NCBI GenBank assembly: GCA_010909165.1
Contig: MU008155.1
Location: forward strand, 496,001 to 560,000
Length of the DNA stretch: 64,000 bases
Direction: 5' to 3'
Source of the DNA: Anthoceros angustus
Lineage: Eukaryota > Plantae > Anthocerotophyta
How positions within the stretch are numbered: position 1 is the stretch's first letter; each line of letters starts with the position of its first letter. This document shows positions 33,900 through 54,238 of the stretch, piece by piece. The position numbers were made by a program, and so were the translations under genes. The notes beneath the pieces are model-generated. The model saw nothing but the letters and a program-made list of their open reading frames with translations. It was not told the origin of the DNA and did no database searches.

Positions 33900-35050
33900 C
33901 TTAGCCCATGGCGGCGGAGAGAGCGGCGAGCAGGGCCACAGGCGGGGAGGGCATCGTGCCCTCCCCATGGAGAAGGAGGCGGGCGGGGGGCGAGGCGCTC
34001 CCGGCGATGGGCGGCGGCAGGCGTGAGGCCCAGGCGGCGGGCGGGGCGGGAGGCACCGCCTCCCCATGTCCATGGAGGCGGGAGGCGGGGGGCGAGTCGC
34101 CCTCGGAGGGGGCAGCTGTGGCCTCCCCAGCGATGGAGGCTGCAGTGCAGGCGGCGCGGCGCGGGGGCAGCTGCCCTCCCCATGGAGAAGGAGTCGGGGC
34201 AGGGCGCCTCCCGGCGATGGAGGCGGCAGGGAGCCAGCGGCGCGCGGGGAGGCGATGCCTCCCCCAGGCCATGGAGAGAGGCGGGGAGGCGAGTCGCCCC
34301 GCCCTCGAAGAAAGGGGCAGCTGGCCTCCCGGCGATGGAGGGCTGCGGCGCAGCGGGGTGCCCAGGCGCAGCGGGCGGGGGCACGCCTCCCCATGGAGAA
34401 GGAGTCGGGCGGGCAGGCGGGCGCCTCCCGAGCGATGGGCGGCGGCAGAGTGCGGGGAGACCCTCCCCATGGATGGGCGGGGGCGGGAGGCAAAGGCGCC
34501 TCCGCCTCCAAGGAACGGGGGCCACTGGCCTCCCCATGGAGGCGGCGAGGCGGGGGCGGCAGGCGGAGCGGGCGGGGAGACATGCCCTCCCCATGGAGAA
34601 GGGGGGCGGGGGCAGAGGCGCCTCCCACAGATGGGCGGCGGGCAGGTGGGCCCAGGCGGCGGCGCAGCGGGGAGGCACATGCCCTCCCCATGTCCATGGC
34701 GGCGGGCGGGGAGGCGAGTCGCCCCGCCCTCGGAAAGGGGCAGCCTGGCCTCCCGGCGATGGGCTGCTGCCGCAGGGGTGCCGGCAGCCAGGCGCGGGGA
34801 GGGCGCCTCCCCATGGAGAAGGAGTCGGGCGGCAGAGGCGCCTCCCCGATGGAGGCGGCAGTGCATGGGGCCCAGCGGCGCGCGGGGAGGCGACGCCTCC
34901 CCATGGCCATGGAGGCGGGCGTGGAGGCGGAGCCGCCTCCGCCCTCGAAAGGGGCAGCTGGCCTCCCCGGCGATAGGCGGCGGTGGCGCGGGGAACCCGG
35001 CGTGAGGCGCAGCGGGGAGGCGGCTGCCCTCCCCATGGTGATGGACGTGG
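33900..35050 (+). repeat. GC-rich higher-order repeat (~210-bp period, built of ~35-45-bp CCTCCCC..ATGGAG sub-units)
   Basis: CCTCCCCATGGAGAAGG recurs at ~33960, 34176, 34387, 34587 and 34807. Confidence 0.85.
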
Positions 35051-35617
35051 AGGTGGGGCTGGGCGGAGGGAGCCCGTGGAGGCGTGGGGAGGCGGTTGCC
35101 CTCCGCGATGGCGGGGCGATCGCCCCGGCAGTGGCGAGAGGGAGAGGGAGCATTGCGCATTGGAGGAGGAAGGCAACCCGCCTTTGGGGACGGCAGGCGG
35201 AGGCGATTGCCGCCGAGGCCGAGGAGGAGGATGGAGGCTGCCTCACGGCGGCCCGGCCGAGGCCGAGCTCGGGCATGGCGGTGGCGATGCCATGTCACCG
35301 CCATGCCCGACCGAGGTCGGCCATGGTGGCGGGAGGGCGATAGCCGCCGAGACCGAGGCCGAGGGCTGGCGATGGCGGGATCGGCGGGGATGCGGAAGGC
35401 GGAGGCGGCCGCGTCGGGGCAGACGGCGAGCGCGGATCAGCGATCTCGGCAGTGGGGAGGCGCCCGGTCCGGTTGAGAAGGCGTATGGGAGGAATAACCA
35501 GTTCCATCGGTGGCCATCTCGGCGTGGAGGCGGTAAGCGAGGCTCGGGCGCCCGGGCGGAGGAGGCGGGAGGCTGCTGCGCGAGCTCCGCAGCGGTGGAG
35601 GACATCCGGCGTGCACA

Positions 35618-35645
35618 GAGGAGGAGGAGGAGGAGGAGGAGGAGG
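35618..35645 (+). repeat. (GGA)n microsatellite (also ~43997-44022)
   Basis: Directly visible. Confidence 0.9.
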
Positions 35646-36688
35646 TGGGAGCAACTCCGGTGGCGGTGGCGAGCGGAGGCCATGTCGGAAGAAGATGGAG
35701 GCGGTGCGGCTCAACCCCAACTCGGGCGAGCACAAGAGGAGGCGCGACTACGAGGAGTCGGACACGGTGTCCAGTGGCAGCGCCCGGCCGGTGCCTCAGC
35801 CCAATGCGGGCCGCTGCTGGGCGGGGGCCAACCCGGGAGGAGGCGATGAGCAGCGGAATGCTCGGCCGTCGAGGCCATGGAGGGCACAATTAAGGTTCCT
35901 CCCAGATGATCAAGCGCATGGAGGACGAGAGTAGGCGTCGTCATCCCTTGTCTTTGAGAGATGCATCGGTTTTGGTTTTGCATAGGGGCGAGCATGCGCC
36001 GTAGGAAGGCCGATGGGAGATAGGGTTTGATGCTAGCTGTGCAATTTTGCGATGTGTGCGGTGGACATCCTTTTTGATCAATGGCACCTTTGAAATTTGG
36101 CTCTTTGCACGCATAAACATTCTTGGCGAGGTTGTTGGGTGAGCAGGCGGTGGTGGTGGGTCGCCATCCCCTCTTCTGTTCGAGCCGCATCGTGCTTCTT
36201 CTTGTTTGAAAGAGGATCGTGGCTCTCATTGTTTCCAGCGCGGGTTCCTTAAGGAATACGGTCCCAAAGTCCATAGGCTGCGAGGAAGCGGCCGTGGGCT
36301 GTGCATGGTTCGCAAACCATGGCGTGCCATGGCCGCGGCCGTCATTACTGCGATACCCATGCGGCGGTAGTAGGGTTGTGAATCAAAGCGGCGCGGCGGC
36401 CGCGTTAGGGTTTGGTGGCCATTGGATTCCTCGAAGAAAACTTAATGGCACAAGGTAGTGCGGAAACATTCGAAAACATAGTGTCCGTCTCTTTGTTTTC
36501 AAAGGTGAAAGCACTGAAAATTTTCAAGGACACCCGTTTCGAGGACATTGTGTGTGTCCCCTTTGGTGCTTGGCCGCTCTTGGTTAGGGCGCCAAAGCGG
36601 CCATGTGGCCATGTGCTGTGAAAAAAGAAACCGTACTGGAATGTAGGGTATATTCCTCAACATCCCCACGCCTTGCATGGGTTTCGCG

Positions 36689-40650: not shown

Positions 40651-42284
40651 TCAAAGCGAGGGGATGCGCATGCATTAGTCTTTGAAAGAGAGGGGGTGGC
40701 GTATAAAGCACGTAGAATAGCAGATTGTATGCGGAACGGTAACCTAGCGCCCAAAGTCGTTGGCCGCGTACATGGCGATTTGTTGTCATGGTTATGCGAG
40801 AACCAGCGACAAGCGGCATGGAGCGTCGGCGGGACACCGTCCGTCGGCGGTTCCACTCGATAGAGGCGGTGAAGCGTTGGGATGCCGATCCGATCTTTGA
40901 GATGGGAAGAACGGACGACATACCAAGGGCAAGGCGGGGAGGAAGCGGCCGGAAGAATGGCGGAAGGCGGAGACATCGGCGACCGACGGCAGTGCATAAA
41001 CGGGTGGTTGCCGCGGTGCGCGGTGTTGAGCGAATGGTGTGGAGGTGATTATCGTGCGATGGACACCTCGATTTCTCCTCTACAGGGTGTAATGCGGAAC
41101 ATGTGGATGACGCGAACTCTGCCGGAAGTGTGAAGGATGGAGAGGGAAGGAGGCGAGTGCAGTGCGCGTGCTCTGGCTGGCCGGCGACAATGGGCAAGCG
41201 CTTTTCAGCAGTGCGCACATCCTTGGAATGGGCGGAGGAGTTTGCCTTGGTGGCTAGTGGAAAGCGAGGAGGTGGTGCGGAAGGTCAAGGGAGGACTTAC
41301 AGTGCAACAGATCACAACACCAGTAGCCAGCGAAGGACGGTTGTAAATGCGTGGCAGTGCCGTCAGGAGGTGAAGCTCCGGTGGGACAAAGGGAAAGGAA
41401 TCGGGGAGGAGACGCGCCCAAGCGGGGATGGCCGTTAAGGGAAGGCGGAGGAGGAGGCGGGGAGTGGCATGGATGATGGGGAGGAGGACGCCTATGGTGT
41501 CGAGGTGCGGCGAGGAAGGTCTAGCAGACCATTTTGTTTGCTGTTGCTATTTTTGCTTGCTATGCGATCACAGTTATGAGCTTGCCATGTGTGCATGGTA
41601 ATAGTAATATCTTGGCGGTGGCACGCGGTTTTGTTTAATGTGGAAGACAGGTGACCCGGTCGGCGTCATTATATGCAATTGGTAGGAAACCCCGTAAAAT
41701 GATTCGAATAGTGATGTGTTAGGCGGTCCAAGATACGCTCTGCGAGTGTCATGTGAAGAGGAAAGGGGTTGGCGGTTAAGGACACGAACACAAGGAGGGC
41801 CAAAAGGGTTGACAAATCGCTAGTGCACCTAAATGTCATGGTTGCCATGCGGGTTAGTCGAGCGGGGTGGCGACAATTGAGTTCATGACAGTGGCGAGCC
41901 GCGGCACGAAGCTAGATGCCAATTGCGGTCTTGGCATGCGAGAAAATTGCGTCCCGTCAAGGCGGCCCGATCAGCCGCCCCATGCGAATATGGCAACCGG
42001 AGGCGGCCGCCACGGAGGGCGCCATCCCGCAAGGCCGGCGCAATTGGAAACAACGAACTGCAAAAGGCGCGGTGGCGGGCGGGGGCGGGGTAAAGGCGAG
42101 GTCGGCAAGGAGGGGAGTGATGGAGAAGGAGACAAGCGAGCGTGGCGGGAAGCGGCGGAGCGGAGGCCCGGGACGGCGGCATGGTGCCGTCTTGTCGGCA
42201 GCAATAACCACTCTTCCTTGGCGGCGGCGGGCGAAGGCGGCGGCGCGGGAGAAGGGGAAGCGAGGGGAGAGCGTCCCTCCCCTT

Positions 42285-43440
42285 AGCCCATGGCGGCGGA
42301 GAGAGCGGCGAGCAGGGCCACAGGCGGGGAGGGCATCGTGCCTCCCATGGAGAAGGAGGCGGGCGGGGGGCGAGGCGCTCCCGGCGATGGGCGGCGGCAG
42401 GCGTGAGGCCCAGGCGGCGGGCGGGGGCGGGGAGGCACCGCCTCCCCATGTCCATGGAGGCGGGGAGGCGGGGGGCGAGTCGCCCCTCGGAGGGGGCAGC
42501 TGTGGCCTCCCCAGCGATGGAGGCTGCAGTGCAGGCGGCGCGGCGCGGGGGCAGCTGCCCTCCCATGGAGAAGGAGTCGGGGCAGGGCGCCTCCCGGCGA
42601 TGGAGGCGGCAGGGAGCCAGCGGCGCGCGGGGGAGGCGATGCCTCCCCCAGGCCATGGAGAGAGGCGGGGAGGCGAGTCGCCCCGCCCTCGAAGAAAGGG
42701 GCAGCTGGCCTCCCGGCGATGGAGGCTGCGGCGCAGCGGGGTGCCCAGGCGCAGCGGGCGGGGGCACGCCTCCCATGGAGAAGGAGTCGGGCGGGCAGGC
42801 GGGCGCCTCCCGAGCGATGGGCGGCGGCAGAGTGCGGGGAGACCCTCCCATGGATGGGCGGGGGCGGGGAGGCAAAGGCGCCTCCGCCCTCCAAGGAACG
42901 GGGGCCACTGGCCTCCCATGGAGGCGGCGAGGCGGGGGCGGCAGGCGGAGCGGGCGGGGGAGACATGCCCTCCCATGGAGAAGGGGGGCGGGGGCAGAGG
43001 CGCCTCCCACAGATGGGCGGCGGGCAGGTGGGCCCAGGCGGCGGCGCAGCGGGGAGGCACATGCCCTCCCCATGTCCATGGCGGCGGGCGGGGAGGCGAG
43101 TCGCCCCGCCCTCGGAAAGGGGCAGCCTGGCCTCCCGGCGATGGGCTGCTGCCGCAGGGGTGCCGGCAGCCAGGCGCGGGGAGGGCGCCTCCCATGGAGA
43201 AGGAGTCGGGCGGCAGAGGCGCCTCCCCGATGGAGGCGGCAGTGCATGGGGCCCAGCGGCGCGCGGGGAGGCGACGCCTCCCATGGCCATGGAGGCGGGC
43301 GTGGAGGCGGAGCCGCCTCCGCCCTCGAAAGGGGCAGCTGGCCTCCCCCGGCGATAGGCGGCGGTGGCGCGGGGAACCCGGCGTGAGGCGCAGCGGGGAG
43401 GCGGCTGCCCTCCCATGGTGATGGACGTGGAGGTGGGGCT
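42285..43440 (+). repeat. Second copy of the GC-rich higher-order repeat
   Basis: Part of the 8.4-kb duplication. Confidence 0.8.
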
Positions 43441-45064
43441 GGGCGGAGGGAGCCCGTGGGAGGCGTGGGGAGGCGGTTGCCCTCCGCGATGGCGGGCGAT
43501 CGCCCCGGCAGTGGCGAGAGGGAGAGGGAGCATTGCGCATTGGAGGAGGAAGGCAACCCGCCTTTGGGGACGGCAGGCGGAGGCGATTGCCGCCGAGGCC
43601 GAGGAGGAGGATGGAGGCTGCCTCACGGCGGCCCGGCCGAGGCCGAGCTCGGGCATGGCGGTGGCGATGCCATGTCACCGCCATGCCCGACCGAGGTCGG
43701 CCATGGTGGCGGGAGGGCGATAGCCGCCGAGACCGAGGCCGAGGGCTGGCGATGGCGGGATCGGCGGGGATGCGGAAGGCGGAGGCGGCCGCGTCGGGGC
43801 AGACGGCGAGCGCGGATCAGCGATCTCGGCAGTGGGGAGGCGCCGGTCCGGTTGAGAAGGCGTATGGGAGGAATAACCAGTTCCATCGGTGGCCATCTCG
43901 GCGTGGAGGCGGTAAGCGAGGCTCGGGCGCCCGGGCGGAGGAGGCGGGAGGCTGCTGCGCGAGCTCCGCAGCGGTGGAGGACATCCGGCGTGCACAGAGG
44001 AGGAGGAGGAGGAGGAGGAGGAGGGGTGGGAGCAACTCCGGTGGCGGTGGCGAGCGGAGGCCATGTCGGAAGAAGATGGAGGCGGTGCGGCTCAACCCCA
44101 ACTCGGGCGAGCACAAGAGGAGGCGCGACTACGAGGAGTCGGACACGGTGTCCAGTGGCAGCGCCCGGCCGGTGCCTCAGCCCAATGCGGGCCGCTGCTG
44201 GGCGGGGGCCAACCCGGGAGGAGGCGATGAGCAGCGGAATGCTCGGCCGTCGAGGCCATGGAGGGCACAATTAAGGTTCCTCCCAGATGATCAAGCGCAT
44301 GGAGGACGAGAGTAGGCGTCGTCATCCCTTGTCTTTGAGAGATGCATCGGTTTTGGTTTTTGCATAGGGGCGAGCATGCGCCGTAGGAAGGCCGATGGGA
44401 GATAGGGTTTGATGCTAGCTGTGCAATTTTGCGATGTGTGCGGTGGACATCCTTTTTGATCAATGGCACCTTTGAAATTTGGCTCTTTGCACGCATAAAC
44501 ATTCTTGGCGAGGTTGTTGGGTGAGCAGGCGGTGGTGGTGGTCGCCATCCCCTCTTCTGTTCGAGCCGCATCGTGCTTCTTCTTGTTTGAAAGAGGATCG
44601 TGGCTCTCATTGTTTCCAGCGCGGGTTCCTTAAGGAATACGGTCCCAAAGTCCATAGGCTGCGAGGAAGCGGCCGTGGGCTGTGCATGGTTCGCAAACCA
44701 TGGCGTGCCATGGCCGCGGCCGTCATTACTGCGATACCCATGCGGCGGTAGTAGGGTTGTGAATCAAAGCGGCGCGGCGGCCGCGTTAGGGTTTGGTGGC
44801 CATTGGATTCCTCGAAGAAAACTTAATGGCACAAGGTAGTGCGGAAACATTCAAACATAGTGTCCGTCTCTTTGTTTTCAAAGGTGAAAGCACTGAAAAT
44901 TTTCAAGGACACCCGTTTGAGGACATTGTGTGTGTCCCTTTGGTGCTTGGCCGCTCTTGGTTAGGGCGCCAAAGCGCCATGTGGCCATGTGCTGTGAAAA
45001 AGAAAACCGTACTGGAATGTAGGGTATATTCCTCAAGATCCCCACGCCTTGCATGGGTTTCGCG

Positions 45065-49096: not shown

Positions 49097-52000
49097 CTGT
49101 ACAAACAAACATCATGAGCTAACCACGTGGAAGTAGCAACGTCGCTAAATTGTTGAATCGTAAGAATGCCAACTTCTCCTGTTGAGGCAGCAAACTTGAA
49201 AGCAAAGCAAAACGCTATGTGCTCTTACCTCCTCTGCAAAAAGTTCTTCAAGAACCCTATTGATCTGCTTGTCCTCAGACACCATAGCTAATGCCATACT
49301 CACAAGCTCATTCGACAGTACATAATCACTGATCTTCGACACAGAAACAAGGTTCTTTGTTCGAGAATCCAGGATTTCACTTATGATAATTGAGCTGTCA
49401 GATGCCTGCTGCATTTCATTGATCCAAGAGCTCTGCATGATACCAGATTCTGCTTGACGAGACACCTGGCTGGCTTTGCCCCTGTACGGCATTCGCTTTG
49501 ACTGTAGGAAGCAATCAAACACAGAAGGGCTGTGTTAACGTACACTTGCAGCAATATCCACAATATACAGATAGGCAGAATGGGTGTCAGCATAAGACTT
49601 CAATCGGATCTGTAGTGTGCTGGTCTATCACCTGAATGTCTCGAATGAGAAGAAGAGTAGCTAGAGAACGTGAATCAGCATTCACAACTGTATCCTCTAG
49701 AGCCTCGTCCGCTAGAATCAATATCTGCAAACATATTCATCTAAAACTTCAAGAGCTTGGGATAATACATGATGAATCACTCAGGAAAGACTGTGTACAC
49801 TATCGTGACTAACCGCACAGACATCTTACAGAGTCAAAGGTCTCAAGCGGGAGACTCTCAAGATGCCGCCGTATTACAGCATTCCCCTCGCGGTGAACTA
49901 GCACTGTGTTGACCAGCTGCTCGGAATTAAGGCCGCCATCTTGAAGTTTCCTTTCTCTGTCTGCTAAGGGAACCTCGCTGAAGAGCCATAATTCTGAACC
50001 ACTGGCTAAAAATGCCTCCAGAACCTGTTTACATGGTTCGGATAATCATTAGAAAGTACAGTACTGTGAGAAGACAAGTGACTAGAGCGTCCAAGCTACA
50101 TCCACCACTTGCATCCGAGACCCCCGACCATAACTGGGGACAGAAGGCCAGGACAGGAGGTAAGTAAGGATGCTGTTCGAAGTAGTGTTCCAATATGGAG
50201 CCAACAGCAGCCCATTGACGTTATCCCCAGACTGATACTTGAATATCCGAAAGTGCTGCGAGTCGCACTATGGCCCAGGTGCCTTACCGTTATCATATCA
50301 TCAATATCCCGACGCCAACCGCAAAAGAGAATCCTCTCTGGAAGCTTTGGAGCACTTACAATTTGGGGCAAGGGCCCTCTCCGCACCTGCAGCAGCGGTG
50401 GTTTGGAATGAGCAAAGCAAGGTAGAGGATCCTGGAAATATCAGTGCTTACCACTATCATATCATCAATATCTCGCCGCCATCCACAAAGCAGGATCTTC
50501 TGTGGCCGTCTTTTTCGCTTGACGGCCCCTGGTGGAAGGGCTTGCATCATCACCTGGAGCACCAAACCCATCTCTATGAGCACCTCCCATGGGTTCTCCA
50601 GTTCAGCTGATCTGAAAGGAGAGTTGCCACAAGAGTGGTGCTGCTCGTATTCCACTTTTAAGCGAATCGATCATATACCAAGCATATGCTGCCCACCATC
50701 ATATGCAACCACATGCTTAAGAGCTCCTGGATCTGGGGTGCAGTTCATTCAACTGAAATATCTGTTTCTCAGCTACAGCATTTGTAGCGAAAGCCAAACC
50801 AACCCTGATGGATCCTCCAATTCAACACTCTTTCTCAACCTCCTCCCCTCCCCGTCCCACACTAAAGCCTTCTAGGACATAATAAAACCCACTGCTGTTT
50901 TTTATGCACAAAGCTAGTGTAATGAATTCCACTTCCACTCAAAGGTGGATTTTGAAGAAATTACCTCAGGCAGAGGTCCAGGCGCATATGTGTCATCATC
51001 TTCAGCCACCACAAGTAATTCATCCCCTTCTGAAAGGACATAGTCGTCCTCTGGATTCAAAACTATTTGTCCACCTCTGGAAGACACTTTCACCCCACAG
51101 GGTATGGCATCTGGAAAGCTGATCAGCACATCTTCAAACTTCATGCCATCGAGCTGGGGCCACCTTTTGATGTAGAACTCAGCATTATCAAATCCAAGAA
51201 TGTCCTCCCAGATCTGCGAACAAAAAAACTTGAGGGTTGGCCGCATCTCATGTGGAAGGTGCATGCAGATTCAACAACTGAGACTACCAGAAATAACATG
51301 GAGCCAATAAACCTGCGCAAGGCCTGGTTGTCGGGCACACTGTATCATTAGACGGCCGATCACATCATGGGCAACTACAGTTTCAACAAGGTCTCCCCCT
51401 ACGAGTTTGACGAGCTGTTCATTGTCAAGATCACTCAACTCCACAACTATGTGTCCTCTCAAGCCTTCCTTCACGCCTGTTAAGTTCAAAACCACCCTCA
51501 GTGCACGAGCGTCACTCTGCAATCATGAGCAGGAAGCTACGGAATTATTAGTGAACGTGTAGTGTTCCTTCAGGGAAATCTTAGTCTGAAAGTCGCCAGA
51601 CTGCTGGTCATCTTGAGACTATGGATGACACACAACATAGGGAAGGGAAGAGAAACTGCATCGTACCTGGTCGGCATTCTCAACTTCAGCTAGGACAATT
51701 ATTGACCTAGCTTTAGAGACAGATACCTGCTTAGTAACAAGGACACAAAGATATTAAGCACTGTAGGGTTGTCGCCAACCTAGTTTTGGACAACCTGGTC
51801 AACAGCCCAAGAGGCACAAATAAATGAGCTAAGATGCTGTCAGATGTACGCTAGCCAACCCTTCCTAGTCCAGGGCATCATCATGAAACAAAGAGGCGCT
51901 TCTTGGAAAGCCCTGGAACATTAAACACAAACCTTCTTCAAATCTGCCATAATAAGCGGACTACCACTTCGGCAAATAACACTGGTTCCCATGAAGTCAA

Positions 52001-54238
52001 ACTCCAGCCTCGCAATGTCTATCTCCATCTCCTCCTTGTCTCGCTCAGCCAGCACAACCACTACACCTCCCCCTAGGCTCTGATTTGCTATGGCTAACTG
52101 CTTCAAAAGTGATCCCTGGATTTCAGTCAAAGTTGTGAGAAGCAGCGACAGGAGCTTTCAGTTACATTCCAGATTAAAACACGCATCTGACCGCAATACA
52201 TTAGCAGGATAAACGAACAGTGTGACGAACTGTGTAAGAAAATGCCTCACCAGTTTATCACTCCAGCCCAGAATCAAAGTATGGTTGCTTTCGATAACCT
52301 CACTCTTTCCTTTCCTTAGTGAGTCGACCTTCTCAGAAATAGCATCGGACACGAGCCCCACCATCAGTGCAAAGATAAGCATGCCCCCAAAACTTATGCA
52401 CACAGACACCACTCTAGGACCCAACCCAACACTGTCTGCATGATTTCCCGCATCAGCTACATAGGTCCATGCAAGCCATAACGTGTCCCACAAGCTCTCG
52501 CTGCTCACGCTGAAGAGAGCGACCCCGCCAACTCCTATTAGCAAAATAGTAGCCAGCAATAGAGCAAGTGGCTTCACAAAAGAGTGAGTAGAGAAGAGGA
52601 CATCCACCCGGTAAGCCAGCTGCTTACTAAGAGGTAATTCCTCTTCTGCAGTCCTATCTGGAGATCCCATCAACCTGGGAAAGTCATCAACGTATTTGAA
52701 GAACAAAAAGGGAGCCAAAAGCACCAATGAAGAGATGACAAGGGCAAATCGCCGAGCCCCAACTGACTCTTGTTCACTTCCATCCATGTCAAGCAAGCCC
52801 TGATCGCCGTGGGTTGGAGTGAGGCATGGAGTGCAAGAACTAACTCTGCTTTGTAGGCGCAGAAGTTCACCCTGAGGAGGCAACACACGTTAAATTTGGC
52901 AGCTACTGAGGCGACAAGGAAAGGCAATATGAAGAAGGTAGTGCTTTGTGCGTACCCTCAGATGTTGGGCCTCTGAGTGCATCGCTACAGCATACATCAT
53001 CGACAACACACATGCAGTCAGAATCTGCACATGTGCAACAGAGACATGAGGGCGATGAGATTAAACGACCACAACGGCAAAAAATTCAAACTTTGAGACA
53101 ATGCACGGAAGCCATGACTAAGAAAACCCAAGCATACCAGCAGAAAATGAACAGAAGAATAAATTGGTCCTCCTAAGGCTCTGAAAGGCCACTGAATAAC
53201 TGAACGCAGATAAGATAACTGCTGGTGAGCTGCAACAGAGGTGCTTGGTGCTGGCCTGGACCCCCCTCCTGATGCCTGCCGTTTAGCTACATCATTGGCA
53301 TAAGATTCCAGGAGTCTTCGCCCCTCAAAGGCTTCCTCGGGGAGGTCCAACAAGCCAACACCAGCATTGACCCTTCTCCTTCTGAGACCAGCTGGGACAG
53401 CATCCTGACTGTTGGAATCCTCCTCCTTGTTCAGGGCCTTGAAGGGAGCACCCGAAGCTCCTCGTAACCCGGGAAAAGTTTCCCAAGTGCTGGTCCCGGT
53501 GCCAGTGCCAGTGCTGGCAGACACTCCATTGGCTTGCAAAGGTGGTTGGGGTTGGGAGTTCGGTGCAGCCTGCGAGCCTGCAGCATCCGCTTCCATCCTA
53601 GGAGCCTTGTTAGGGCGTACCAGCAAGTGCTCATTTCTGTCGCTGTCCGCCCGGGGCCGAGGCTTCCAAGCATTCTTCCGCAACAGACCTCCATCCCGGG
53701 AGAGCAGGGAGGCTGTGGCGCCCTCCTTGCCGCCCTTCCCCTTGTCGAATTTATCAAATCTAACTCGGAGGAGATCCTCAGAGAACTCCTTGGCTGTCCT
53801 CCTTTCCTTAGGAGAAAGTGGGCTGCTTCCATAGCTTCCAAAAACGAACCCATCAGGCGCAGCAGCCGCTTCCACCTGACCCCTGCTCAGATCTCTGCTC
53901 GCCGAGTCTCCGTTCACCGATCCTGCATTGTCCGCAGCCCCTAGCGCGGCACGAGCTTCTCTGACAGGCTCCTTCTGCGCTCCAATGGACTTGGGCGAGC
54001 TGTTCAAGCGCCTCACCGTCGGCAGCAGGGGCCCAGGAAACACGGCGGTGACGCCGTCTTGGACCTCGCCCGACGGGATGGAGCGGGACCTGGTGAGGCG
54101 CTTAGTCTCGGATCCTGCCCCTCGGTCCGGCGATCCAATCATAGAATTGACGAGGGAGGAGATGGGATCCTGCGCTCCCTTGGGATCATGCACTCCTTTC
54201 TCTGGAAGCTGGTCATCTAGGCCGCTCCTTTTCAGCAT
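48878..54238 (-). CDS. DMI1: CASTOR/POLLUX/DMI1 nuclear-envelope cation channel with RCK domains, 12 exons, ~1121 aa by exon arithmetic
   Basis: Exons, all GT-AG and phase 0: 54238-53138, 53024-52956, 52871-52251, 52115-51933, 51726-51667, 51516-51313, 51213-50965, [50553-50452 or 50386-50288], 50024-49830, 49724-49632, 49501-49229, 49096-48878. Motifs: VADAGNHAD, GLVSDAISEKVDSLRKGKSEVIE, GTSVICRSGSPL, HDVIGRLMIQCARQPGLAQ, CGWRRDIDDM, SDYVLSNELVSMALAMV. CASTOR versus POLLUX orthology cannot be assigned here. Confidence 0.96.
49229..49501 (-). CDS. DMI1: Exon 11
   Basis: SKRMPY...INRVLEELFAEE. Confidence 0.95.
49632..49724 (-). CDS. DMI1: Exon 10
   Basis: ILILADE...DSRSLATLLLIRDIQ. Confidence 0.95.
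49830..50024 (-). CDS. DMI1: Exon 9
   Basis: VLEAFLASGSELWLF...LPLETFDS. Confidence 0.95.
50288..50386 (-). CDS. DMI1: Exon 8b (canonical-like): VRRGPLPQIVSAPKLPERILFCGWRRDIDDMIT
   Basis: CTGCAG acceptor, GTAAGG donor, 99 bp, phase 0. Confidence 0.9.
50452..50553 (-). CDS. DMI1: Exon 8a (variant duplicate): VMMQALPPGAVKRKRRPQKILLCGWRRDIDDMIV
   Basis: CTCCAG acceptor, GTAAGC donor, 102 bp, phase 0. Confidence 0.8.
50965..51213 (-). CDS. DMI1: Exon 7
   Basis: IWEDILGFDNAEFYIKRWP...YAPGPLPE. Confidence 0.95.
51313..51516 (-). CDS. DMI1: Exon 6
   Basis: SDARALRVVL...QPGLAQ. Confidence 0.95.
51667..51726 (-). CDS. DMI1: Exon 5
   Basis: VSVSKARSIIVLAEVENADQ. Confidence 0.95.
51933..52115 (-). 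CDS. DMI1: Exon 4
   Basis: GSLLKQLAIAN...ADLKK. Confidence 0.95.
52251..52871 (-). CDS. DMI1: Exon 3 (TM segments, pore and filter ADAGNHA, start of RCK1)
   Basis: LAYRVDVLFS...WTYVADAGNHAD...GWSDKL. Confidence 0.95.
52956..53024 (-). CDS. DMI1: Exon 2 (ILTACVLSMMYAVAMHSEAQHLR)
   Basis: GTGCAG acceptor, GTACGC donor, in frame. Confidence 0.8.
53138..54238 (-). CDS. DMI1: DMI1-family exon 1 (long low-complexity N-terminus to the start of TM1)
   Basis: ATG at 54238, 367 codons, donor GTATGC. Confidence 0.8.

Follow-up and report, generated by a model that had tools for sequence, protein, structure and literature searches.

Can a single ion-channel gene of a hornwort encode two forms of its gating ring by choosing between two neighbouring exons? 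The question was raised by the window, a stretch of 64,000 nucleotides (nt) of Anthoceros angustus (assembly GCA_010909165.1, contig MU008155.1, positions 496,001 to 560,000 of the forward strand), in which a CASTOR/POLLUX/DMI1-type channel gene at 54238-48878 (-) carries two similar exons, 8a and 8b, in tandem between its constitutive exons 7 and 9. CASTOR, POLLUX and DMI1 produce the nuclear calcium spiking on which mycorrhizal and nodule symbioses depend. An earlier note, made from the letters of the DNA alone, had described 8a and 8b as a duplicated exon and had proposed that one gene thereby makes two isoforms by mutually exclusive splicing; its exon coordinates, lengths and translations, the AG/GT sites, phase 0 and the 65-nt separation were all reproduced exactly. 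Judged by RNA contigs, by comparison with relatives and by a search for the same pair in other plants, 8a and 8b probably are a mutually exclusive exon cluster in this single CASTOR/POLLUX-type channel gene.

The exon cluster and its transcripts

RNA contig sets X1, X26 and X6 and the DNA contig set X25 were aligned to positions 49500-51600 of the window. X1 was derived from the window's own organism, with all contigs at least 99% identical to the window; X25, X6 and X26 were derived from the related organisms B, C and E, respectively. Constitutive introns were spliced in X1 (joints 49724/49830 and 51213/51313), its contigs therefore being genuine RNA, and RNA joints matched the predicted exon ends to the base. 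All four joints between the pair and its neighbours, by which the earlier note had proposed to judge its reading, were found in X1: exon 7-8b at a depth of 42.6, exon 7-8a at 35.2, 8b-exon 9 at 44.3 and 8a-exon 9 at 15.1. For X26, depths of 32.8 (7-8b), 16.6 (7-8a) and 22.2 (8b-9) were recorded and 8a-9 was not seen; X6 contained 7-8b at 11.7, and the joints 7-8a, 8b-9 and 8a-9 were not seen there. The joints of 8b were thus present in two or three organisms. Neither an 8a-8b splice joint, with the 65-nt spacer removed on its own, nor a joint of exon 7 to exon 9 skipping both exons was found in the three RNA runs, whose contigs drop rare forms.

Besides the spliced forms, short unspliced contigs running from 8a through the spacer into 8b were present at depths of 19.2 in X1 and 23.8 in X26. 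Such RNAs hold both exons, but out of frame: the kept spacer shifts the frame and leads to a stop inside 8b, where the read-through open reading frame (ORF) ends ...CGEGPCPKL*. The depths in X1 balance, 35.2 entering 8a against 15.1 leaving to exon 9 plus 19.2 with the spacer kept, and about half of the 8a-containing RNA keeps the 65-nt spacer. As the intron between exon 7 and 8a was at zero depth in X1, the retained spacer represents RNA and not DNA carry-over. The gene yields b-only mRNA, a-only mRNA and an unproductive RNA of a, spacer and b.

Several observations weigh against reading these RNAs as two productive isoforms. Support for the productive 8a-9 joint came from a single contig of a single run (X1), the 8a flux of X26 went entirely into the spacer-retaining form, and X6 showed 8a in unspliced RNA only. 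In Logan contigs, moreover, rare variants are lost and joints far apart are not phased, and hence no single molecule reading 7-8a-9 was seen. Of the proposal of two isoforms by mutually exclusive splicing, the part resting on the four joints and on the missing 8a-8b and 7-9 joints was borne out; the proposal has to be qualified by the large share of spacer-retaining 8a RNA and by the restriction of 8a-9 to one run.

The same depths could be explained if 8a were mainly a switch for unproductive splicing, by which the kept spacer introduces a premature stop and nonsense-mediated decay (NMD) lowers the amount of channel, with a-only mRNA as a minor by-product. In X26 the whole flux through 8a (16.6 + 7.3) matches the spacer-retaining contig (23.8) in a set with no 8a-9 joint, and in X1 19.2 of the 35.2 of 8a depth keep the spacer; against such a switch, the 8a-9 joint exists, at a depth of about 15, and the ratio of non-synonymous to synonymous rates (dN/dS) between 8a and 8b is 0.14.

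Retention was also observed downstream of the pair. In X1 the 263-nt intron after 8b (50025-50287) was present in an unspliced contig at a depth of 28.3, compared with 44.3 for the spliced joint, and the main contig of organism C (X6) retained this intron with the next one spliced. Splicing around the exon cluster seems to be slow or regulated.

Both exons are in phase 0. Exon 8a, with an acceptor ending in ...ctccag and a donor beginning with gtaagc, is translated as VMMQALPPGAVKRKRRPQKILLCGWRRDIDDMIV, a basic linker (KRKRRPQK) followed by ILLCGWRRDIDDMIV; exon 8b, with an acceptor ending in ...ctgcag and a donor beginning with gtaagg, is translated as VRRGPLPQIVSAPKLPERILFCGWRRDIDDMIT. Over the last 18 residues 14/18 are identical, and the corresponding codons differ by 6.0 synonymous and 5.0 non-synonymous changes (dN/dS 0.14, dS 0.89; Fisher p = 0.008 against equal synonymous and non-synonymous rates, p about 0.02 against one copy drifting neutrally since duplication). 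The six synonymous differences from which purifying selection on both copies had been proposed were all present, and the claim itself was upheld by these values. By this measure both exon copies are under constraint, and with a dS of about 0.9 between 8a and 8b the duplication is therefore old.

In contigs of relatives the frame of 8a was intact, and the exon was in place in the DNA of organism B (X25) and in the RNA of organisms C (X6) and E (X26). Across 8a, a 197-nt contig of X26 had no gaps and four substitutions, among them one synonymous change within 8a and one Pro to Ser in the variable part of the linker. Among the grounds that the earlier note had named for abandoning its reading, neither a lack of transcripts using 8a nor the absence or decay of 8a in close relatives was encountered, 8a being spliced to exon 7 in X1 and X26 and in place in B, C and E. 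An assembly artefact was rejected, since the exon order is the same in DNA and RNA contigs obtained independently from four organisms. As a separate observation, introns of the relatives were about 3-4% diverged from the window with 8a and 8b nearly unchanged, and at 50815-50872, in the intron before 8a, related organisms carry a replacement or deletion of 56-62 nt plus several small indels.

It is very improbable that 8a is decaying or is a pseudo-exon without function, or that both exons are normally included together. Ab initio gene models in many plants do include both exons, and 8a aligns to solved CASTOR and DMI1 chains less well than 8b. Decay is contradicted by the splicing of 8a to exon 7 in X1 and X26 and to exon 9 in X1, by its intact frame and at most four substitutions without gaps in the X26 contig, and by the dN/dS value; joint inclusion is contradicted by the missing 8a-8b joint in the three RNA runs.

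The gene was modelled from tblastn matches of CASTOR, POLLUX and Closterium proteins, which span the channel gene from the pore to the C-terminus, together with GT-AG sites, and has no internal stops. Its mRNA holds 11 coding exons, with one alternative exon in addition, and the predicted product is 1098 aa (b form) or 1099 aa (a form). The numbers 8a and 8b are nominal, as the pair comes after the sixth coding exon of the model. The surrounding ORFs matched Pfam Castor_Poll_mid (PF06241; E 3.6e-33), and a PDB search with one exon as query returned DMI1 7vm8, CASTOR 6o7c and also 6o6j at E ~4e-45. The pore exon is translated as ...WTYVADAGNHADSVG... and contains a selectivity filter of the DMI1 type, which fits A-D-[AS]-G-N-H-A. 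Exon 7 ends ...DDDTYAPGPLPE in phase 0, and exon 9 begins VLEAFLASGSELW.... In a whole-protein tree the window gene was placed among bryophytes, outside the seed-plant CASTOR/POLLUX split. The features are listed in Table 1.

Table 1 Features of the channel gene around the exon pair, in positions of the window
Feature	Position	Strand	Evidence
Selectivity filter ADAGNHA	52437-52457	(-)	translation of pore exon
Exon 7, constitutive, upstream of pair	50965-51213	(-)	RNA joints 51213/51313, 50965/50553, 50965/50386; translation
Intron exon 7 to 8a, 411 nt	50554-50964	(-)	joint 50553/50965 in X1 (35.2) and X26 (16.6)
Exon 8a (a-type, alternative), 102 nt	50452-50553	(-)	sequence; joints 7-8a, 8a-9; exon tree
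Spacer intron 8a/8b, 65 nt, GT..AG	50387-50451	(-)	no 8a-8b joint; unspliced contigs cross it
Exon 8b (b-type, canonical), 99 nt	50288-50386	(-)	full-length alignment to LjCASTOR and MtDMI1 chains; joints 7-8b, 8b-9
Intron 8b to exon 9, 263 nt	50025-50287	(-)	joint 50288/50024; partly retained in RNA
Exon 9, constitutive, downstream of pair	49830-50024	(-)	joints to 8a, 8b and next exon (49724/49830); translation

The first coding exon (54238-53138) is unusually long (367 codons) and poorly conserved, with only RSRSIPS...FPGPLLPTVRR matching POLLUX N-termini. Elsewhere in the window, the G+C content reaches 74-76% at 34001-36000 and 42001-44300. The second of these stretches lies a short way downstream of the channel gene and contains long Gly/Arg/Pro-rich ORFs that overlap one another on both strands (43456-44315); it looks like low-complexity or repeat DNA.

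The pair in seed plants and its origin

Protein representatives found with exon 7 as query continue ...VKEAVYIDIVHPERKPQKILLCGWRRDIDDMIA. A grass transcript contig contained an a-type exon, followed by a 52-nt GT..AG spacer and the canonical exon VRRGYLPKDFVVPKSPERILFCGWRRDIEDMIM. A search with this grass a-type exon found 252 proteins, 119 of which were classified; monocots, magnoliids and eudicots are all represented among those with the a exon. Of the classified gene models, 59/119 contained both exons, at a distance of exactly 33 residues, and 47/119 the a exon only, many of these being RefSeq entries named 'CASTOR isoform X2', as annotated for example in rice, sorghum, grape, cacao and cucumber. 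The RefSeq isoforms X1 (XP_015870051.3) and X2 (XP_015870059.3) of Ziziphus jujuba are both 894 aa long and differ only in this exon, and the genomic spacer between the two exons measures 57 nt with an in-frame stop (TGA). Both exons were also held by CASTOR-clade proteins of Ginkgo and Cryptomeria.

The 59 deposited plant CASTOR models with both exons (e.g. P0152-P0158, P0167, P0173) carry a spurious tandem duplication of 33 residues covering the linker and strand betaA, and in a few of them the spacer (54 or 66 nt) is translated in frame. Of practical consequence, a false duplication from the inclusion of both exons is thereby present in 59 sampled plant gene models. In pooid grass CASTOR (Alopecurus, Festuca, Lolium; P0225, P0228, P0230, P0231, P0224) the a exon reads ILLCGMRRDIDDMIV, and in the a form only Met replaces the otherwise invariant Trp of CGWRRD; these are listed by RefSeq as isoform X2.

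With tblastn, only b and no a-type exon was found in Rubroshorea POLLUX, Marchantia paleacea, Calypogeia, Diphasiastrum, Closterium and another alga. The intron preceding b, in which no a-type exon was detectable, was 4.7 kb long in Diphasiastrum; in Rubroshorea POLLUX (215 nt), Marchantia and Calypogeia its length was 214-391 nt. When the Cryptomeria a exon was used as query in a word-indexed search, 13 candidates were obtained, none of them from ferns, a result that is uninformative about ferns. The CASTOR/POLLUX locus of Closterium sp. Naga37s-1 showed many short local tandem duplications of coding pieces, such as copies of MVGGRMVETVVAHD and another GWRRDIDDMIT some 100 nt beyond the exon; either the gene is odd or the assembly messy, and the 1238-aa model looks inflated.

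Two statements of the earlier note have to be revised on these grounds. Its view that angiosperms have one such exon is right for POLLUX/DMI1 and wrong for CASTOR, where the a/b pair is widespread and annotated as RefSeq isoforms. Its suggestion that the pair mimics the CASTOR/POLLUX split within one locus has to be dropped, as CASTOR itself keeps both exons and POLLUX only b. In the literature searched, neither CASTOR/POLLUX splicing nor this pair of exons was the subject of any paper. The a/b isoforms of seed plants are already machine-annotated in RefSeq, and the hornwort pair is a new, early-diverging member of an undescribed kind.

Seed plants also bear on the role of 8a as a switch for unproductive splicing. 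Frame-broken grass Logan transcripts with a, the 52-nt spacer and b are common (P0010 represents 38 member sequences and occurs on 24 contigs), and the in-frame TGA in the Ziziphus spacer is in line with such a switch. In a pure poison exon, however, the peptide would not have to be conserved, whereas across seed plants positions 14-33 of the a exon are nearly invariant in protein sequence; in-frame a-only RefSeq isoforms exist in many species, and some spacers are multiples of 3 (54 or 66 nt) and are read through in frame in gene models. A mainly unproductive role is thus unlikely. Because of the strict conservation of the a exon at the protein level and the in-frame a-only mRNAs, an unproductive valve cannot be the sole role of 8a, and protein-making and valve roles could coexist. 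Three lines of evidence, the conservation of its peptide, the persistently short spacer and the RNA joints, indicate that the a form is both used and selected.

Whether the hornwort and seed-plant pairs go back to one duplication was examined on the exon peptides. The signature R-[KR]-P-Q-K-I-L-L...M-I-V is common to 8a and the a exons of seed plants, 8a also being basic at position 15 as they are. Its a-type states are rare among 180 unique b exons (R14 in 9/180, Q17 in 2/180, L21 in 20/180, V33 in 6/180), and with the positions used for classification excluded, the C-terminal half of 8a favours the a-type by ~10 bits. In a maximum-likelihood (ML) tree of 59 exon peptides 8a was placed inside the seed-plant a clade with support of 100/97. 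From these sequence comparisons 8a is likely, though unproven, to be homologous to the seed-plant CASTOR a exon. If the a exons are homologous, the pair would predate the CASTOR/POLLUX duplication and would have been lost in POLLUX/DMI1, liverworts and lycophytes.

Set against a common origin are the approximately unbiased (AU) test, by which 8a and 8b as sisters are not rejected (p = 0.27), the long branch of 8a (0.74), the b-like L6-P7 kept in its N-terminal half, and the at least three losses that a single origin requires. The hornwort pair might instead have arisen by a tandem exon duplication of its own, independent of seed-plant CASTOR, with a-type residues and the short spacer acquired convergently. 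This would accord with the AU result, with the b-like N-terminal half and the intermediate whole-exon score of 8a (-11 bits, a-type against b-type), with the missing a exon in Marchantia paleacea, Calypogeia, Diphasiastrum, Closterium, another alga and one POLLUX gene, and with parsimony, two gains being cheaper than one gain plus at least three losses. It is nevertheless doubtful: two origins would require convergence in sequence, order and spacer length, with 8a matching the a-type at four or five diagnostic positions whose states are seldom found in b exons (R14, basic 15, Q17, L21, V33), the a exon upstream in both cases and the spacer equally very short; the bit score of the C-terminal half, the position of 8a in the ML tree and the age of the duplication implied by dS also speak for shared descent. 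A single ancient origin of the a/b pair is fairly likely.

Spacer length and the gating ring

All sites of the pair are of the U2-type GT-AG, both donors being GTAAG, and the two exons together measure 201 nt (102 + 99), so that double inclusion or double skipping would keep the frame; neither U12 incompatibility nor NMD can therefore enforce the choice. An RNA folding analysis of the exon cluster, a weak test of RNA structure, gave a result no better than shuffled sequence (z = +0.5). The 65-nt spacer stands out against the other ten introns of the channel gene (99-411 nt), and the seed-plant spacers are similarly short at 52-66 nt (52 in the grass, 57 in Ziziphus, and 54, 54, 54, 54 and 66 inferred from read-through gene models). 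Candidate branch sites read from the spacer sequence are CTGAT (A at +11) and CTCAT (A at +43).

Plant introns reportedly need about 70 nt for splicing, a figure ascribed to Goodall and Filipowicz in 1990. It weakens the argument from length that this minimum is a general plant figure and not the threshold of this plant. In the proposed sequence of events, exon 7 would be joined to one of the two exons, the canonical form resulting if this is 8b. If it is 8a, the donor of 8a would then be joined to exon 9, giving a-only mRNA, or stay unused, in which case the 65-nt spacer would remain, the frame break and the RNA be unproductive. Joining of 8a to 8b would be blocked, the spacer being too short to be removed as an intron. 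Such steric hindrance is the best-supported candidate for the mechanism of exclusivity.

By PDB alignment the exon corresponds to residues 565-597 of Lotus japonicus CASTOR (LjCASTOR), i.e. the second half of the linker between the RCK1 and RCK2 domains, strand betaA of RCK2 and R589/R590, in agreement with the placement given by the earlier note. On the solved CASTOR and DMI1 chains 8b aligns full length to chain residues 254-286 and 8a less well. According to Kim et al. 2019 (PMC6697748), the RCK1-RCK2 linker comprises residues 553-580, both arginines of CGWRRD (R589 and R590) stack on H463, and R590 also forms a bridge to D442 at the Ca(I) site. CGWRRD is kept in both 8a and 8b. The differences between a and b lie in the last ~18 linker residues, in F/L585 and in T or M versus V597, and in seed-plant CASTOR also in M592I and E593D; within and beyond strand betaA, the two proteins of the hornwort diverge at three or four positions. 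The linker charge is +6 (a) versus +3 (b) in the hornwort and on average +3.1 versus +2.0 in 60 seed-plant pairs.

The linker is the 'rope' tying the C-lobes to the N-lobe of RCK2, and the swap alters its last ~18 residues. A change in gating-ring coupling or in partner binding is plausible and would be the likely effect of the swap. AlphaFold2 models of the soluble domains of Ziziphus a and b, built with 36-40 aligned homologues, reached a mean predicted local distance difference test (pLDDT) score of only 43 and 48, too low for a comparison of the linker. A hornwort-specific nuclear localisation signal (KRKRR in 8a) was considered and kept as no more than a weak idea, the basic run not being conserved in seed-plant a exons.

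Comparison with known channels and exon clusters

Taken at its widest, the pair may be one invention that hornworts and seed plants inherited from their common ancestor (>450 million years ago) and that encodes two functionally distinct gating-ring states, with the a form lost in POLLUX/DMI1, liverworts and lycophytes. This reading is tentative, its chances being rated somewhat below even. The distinct states could differ, for example, in Ca2+ activation or in partner binding through the linker 'rope', and if so, all structural and electrophysiological studies so far would have covered one of two conserved channel isoforms. As the alternative exon replaces the ring-tying linker, both in the hornwort and across seed-plant CASTOR, the question is raised whether a and b channels differ in Ca2+ activation, complex formation or timing. 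The comparison of CASTOR with POLLUX changes as well, CASTOR keeping two isoforms and POLLUX one, and the pair would join the small number of mutually exclusive exons in plants for which a steric mechanism is plausible.

The gating rings of Lotus japonicus CASTOR and Medicago DMI1 (PDB 6O7A, 6O7C, 6O6J, 7VM8; PMC6697748) contain the CGWRRD arginines that are common to both exons. The solved CASTOR and DMI1 structures and the electrophysiology all used the b form, and the a-type linker lies outside them. The POLLUX/DMI1/SYM8 genes of seed plants and their single-copy counterparts in liverworts and lycophytes encode orthologous channels. Around b their exon structure is the same as in the hornwort gene, but b is the only one of the two exons that they have.

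Exons 2 and 3 of alpha-tropomyosin are said to exclude each other by steric hindrance, as attributed to Smith and Nadal-Ginard in 1989. Unlike that pair, 8a and 8b belong to a plant gene, their spacer is often retained to give frame-broken RNA, and their branch sites are candidates only; like it, they would be separated by an intron too short to splice, have U2-type sites and could be included together in frame.

The closest counterpart is the pair of seed-plant CASTOR. The window gene, unlike seed-plant CASTOR, lies outside the seed-plant CASTOR/POLLUX duplication, and 8a has an N-terminal half (VMMQALPPGAVKRKRR) that does not resemble, and is more basic than, the VKEAxFIxIxRPxRK of seed plants. 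The same exon is replaced in both (LjCASTOR 565-597), with a upstream of b, both exons of 33-34 codons and in phase 0, a very short spacer between them and spacer-retaining transcripts; the a signature ...[RK][RK]PQKILLCGWRRDIDDMIV is common to 8a and the seed-plant a exons, and is set apart from the b signature ...PE[RK]ILFCGWRRD..DMI[MT].

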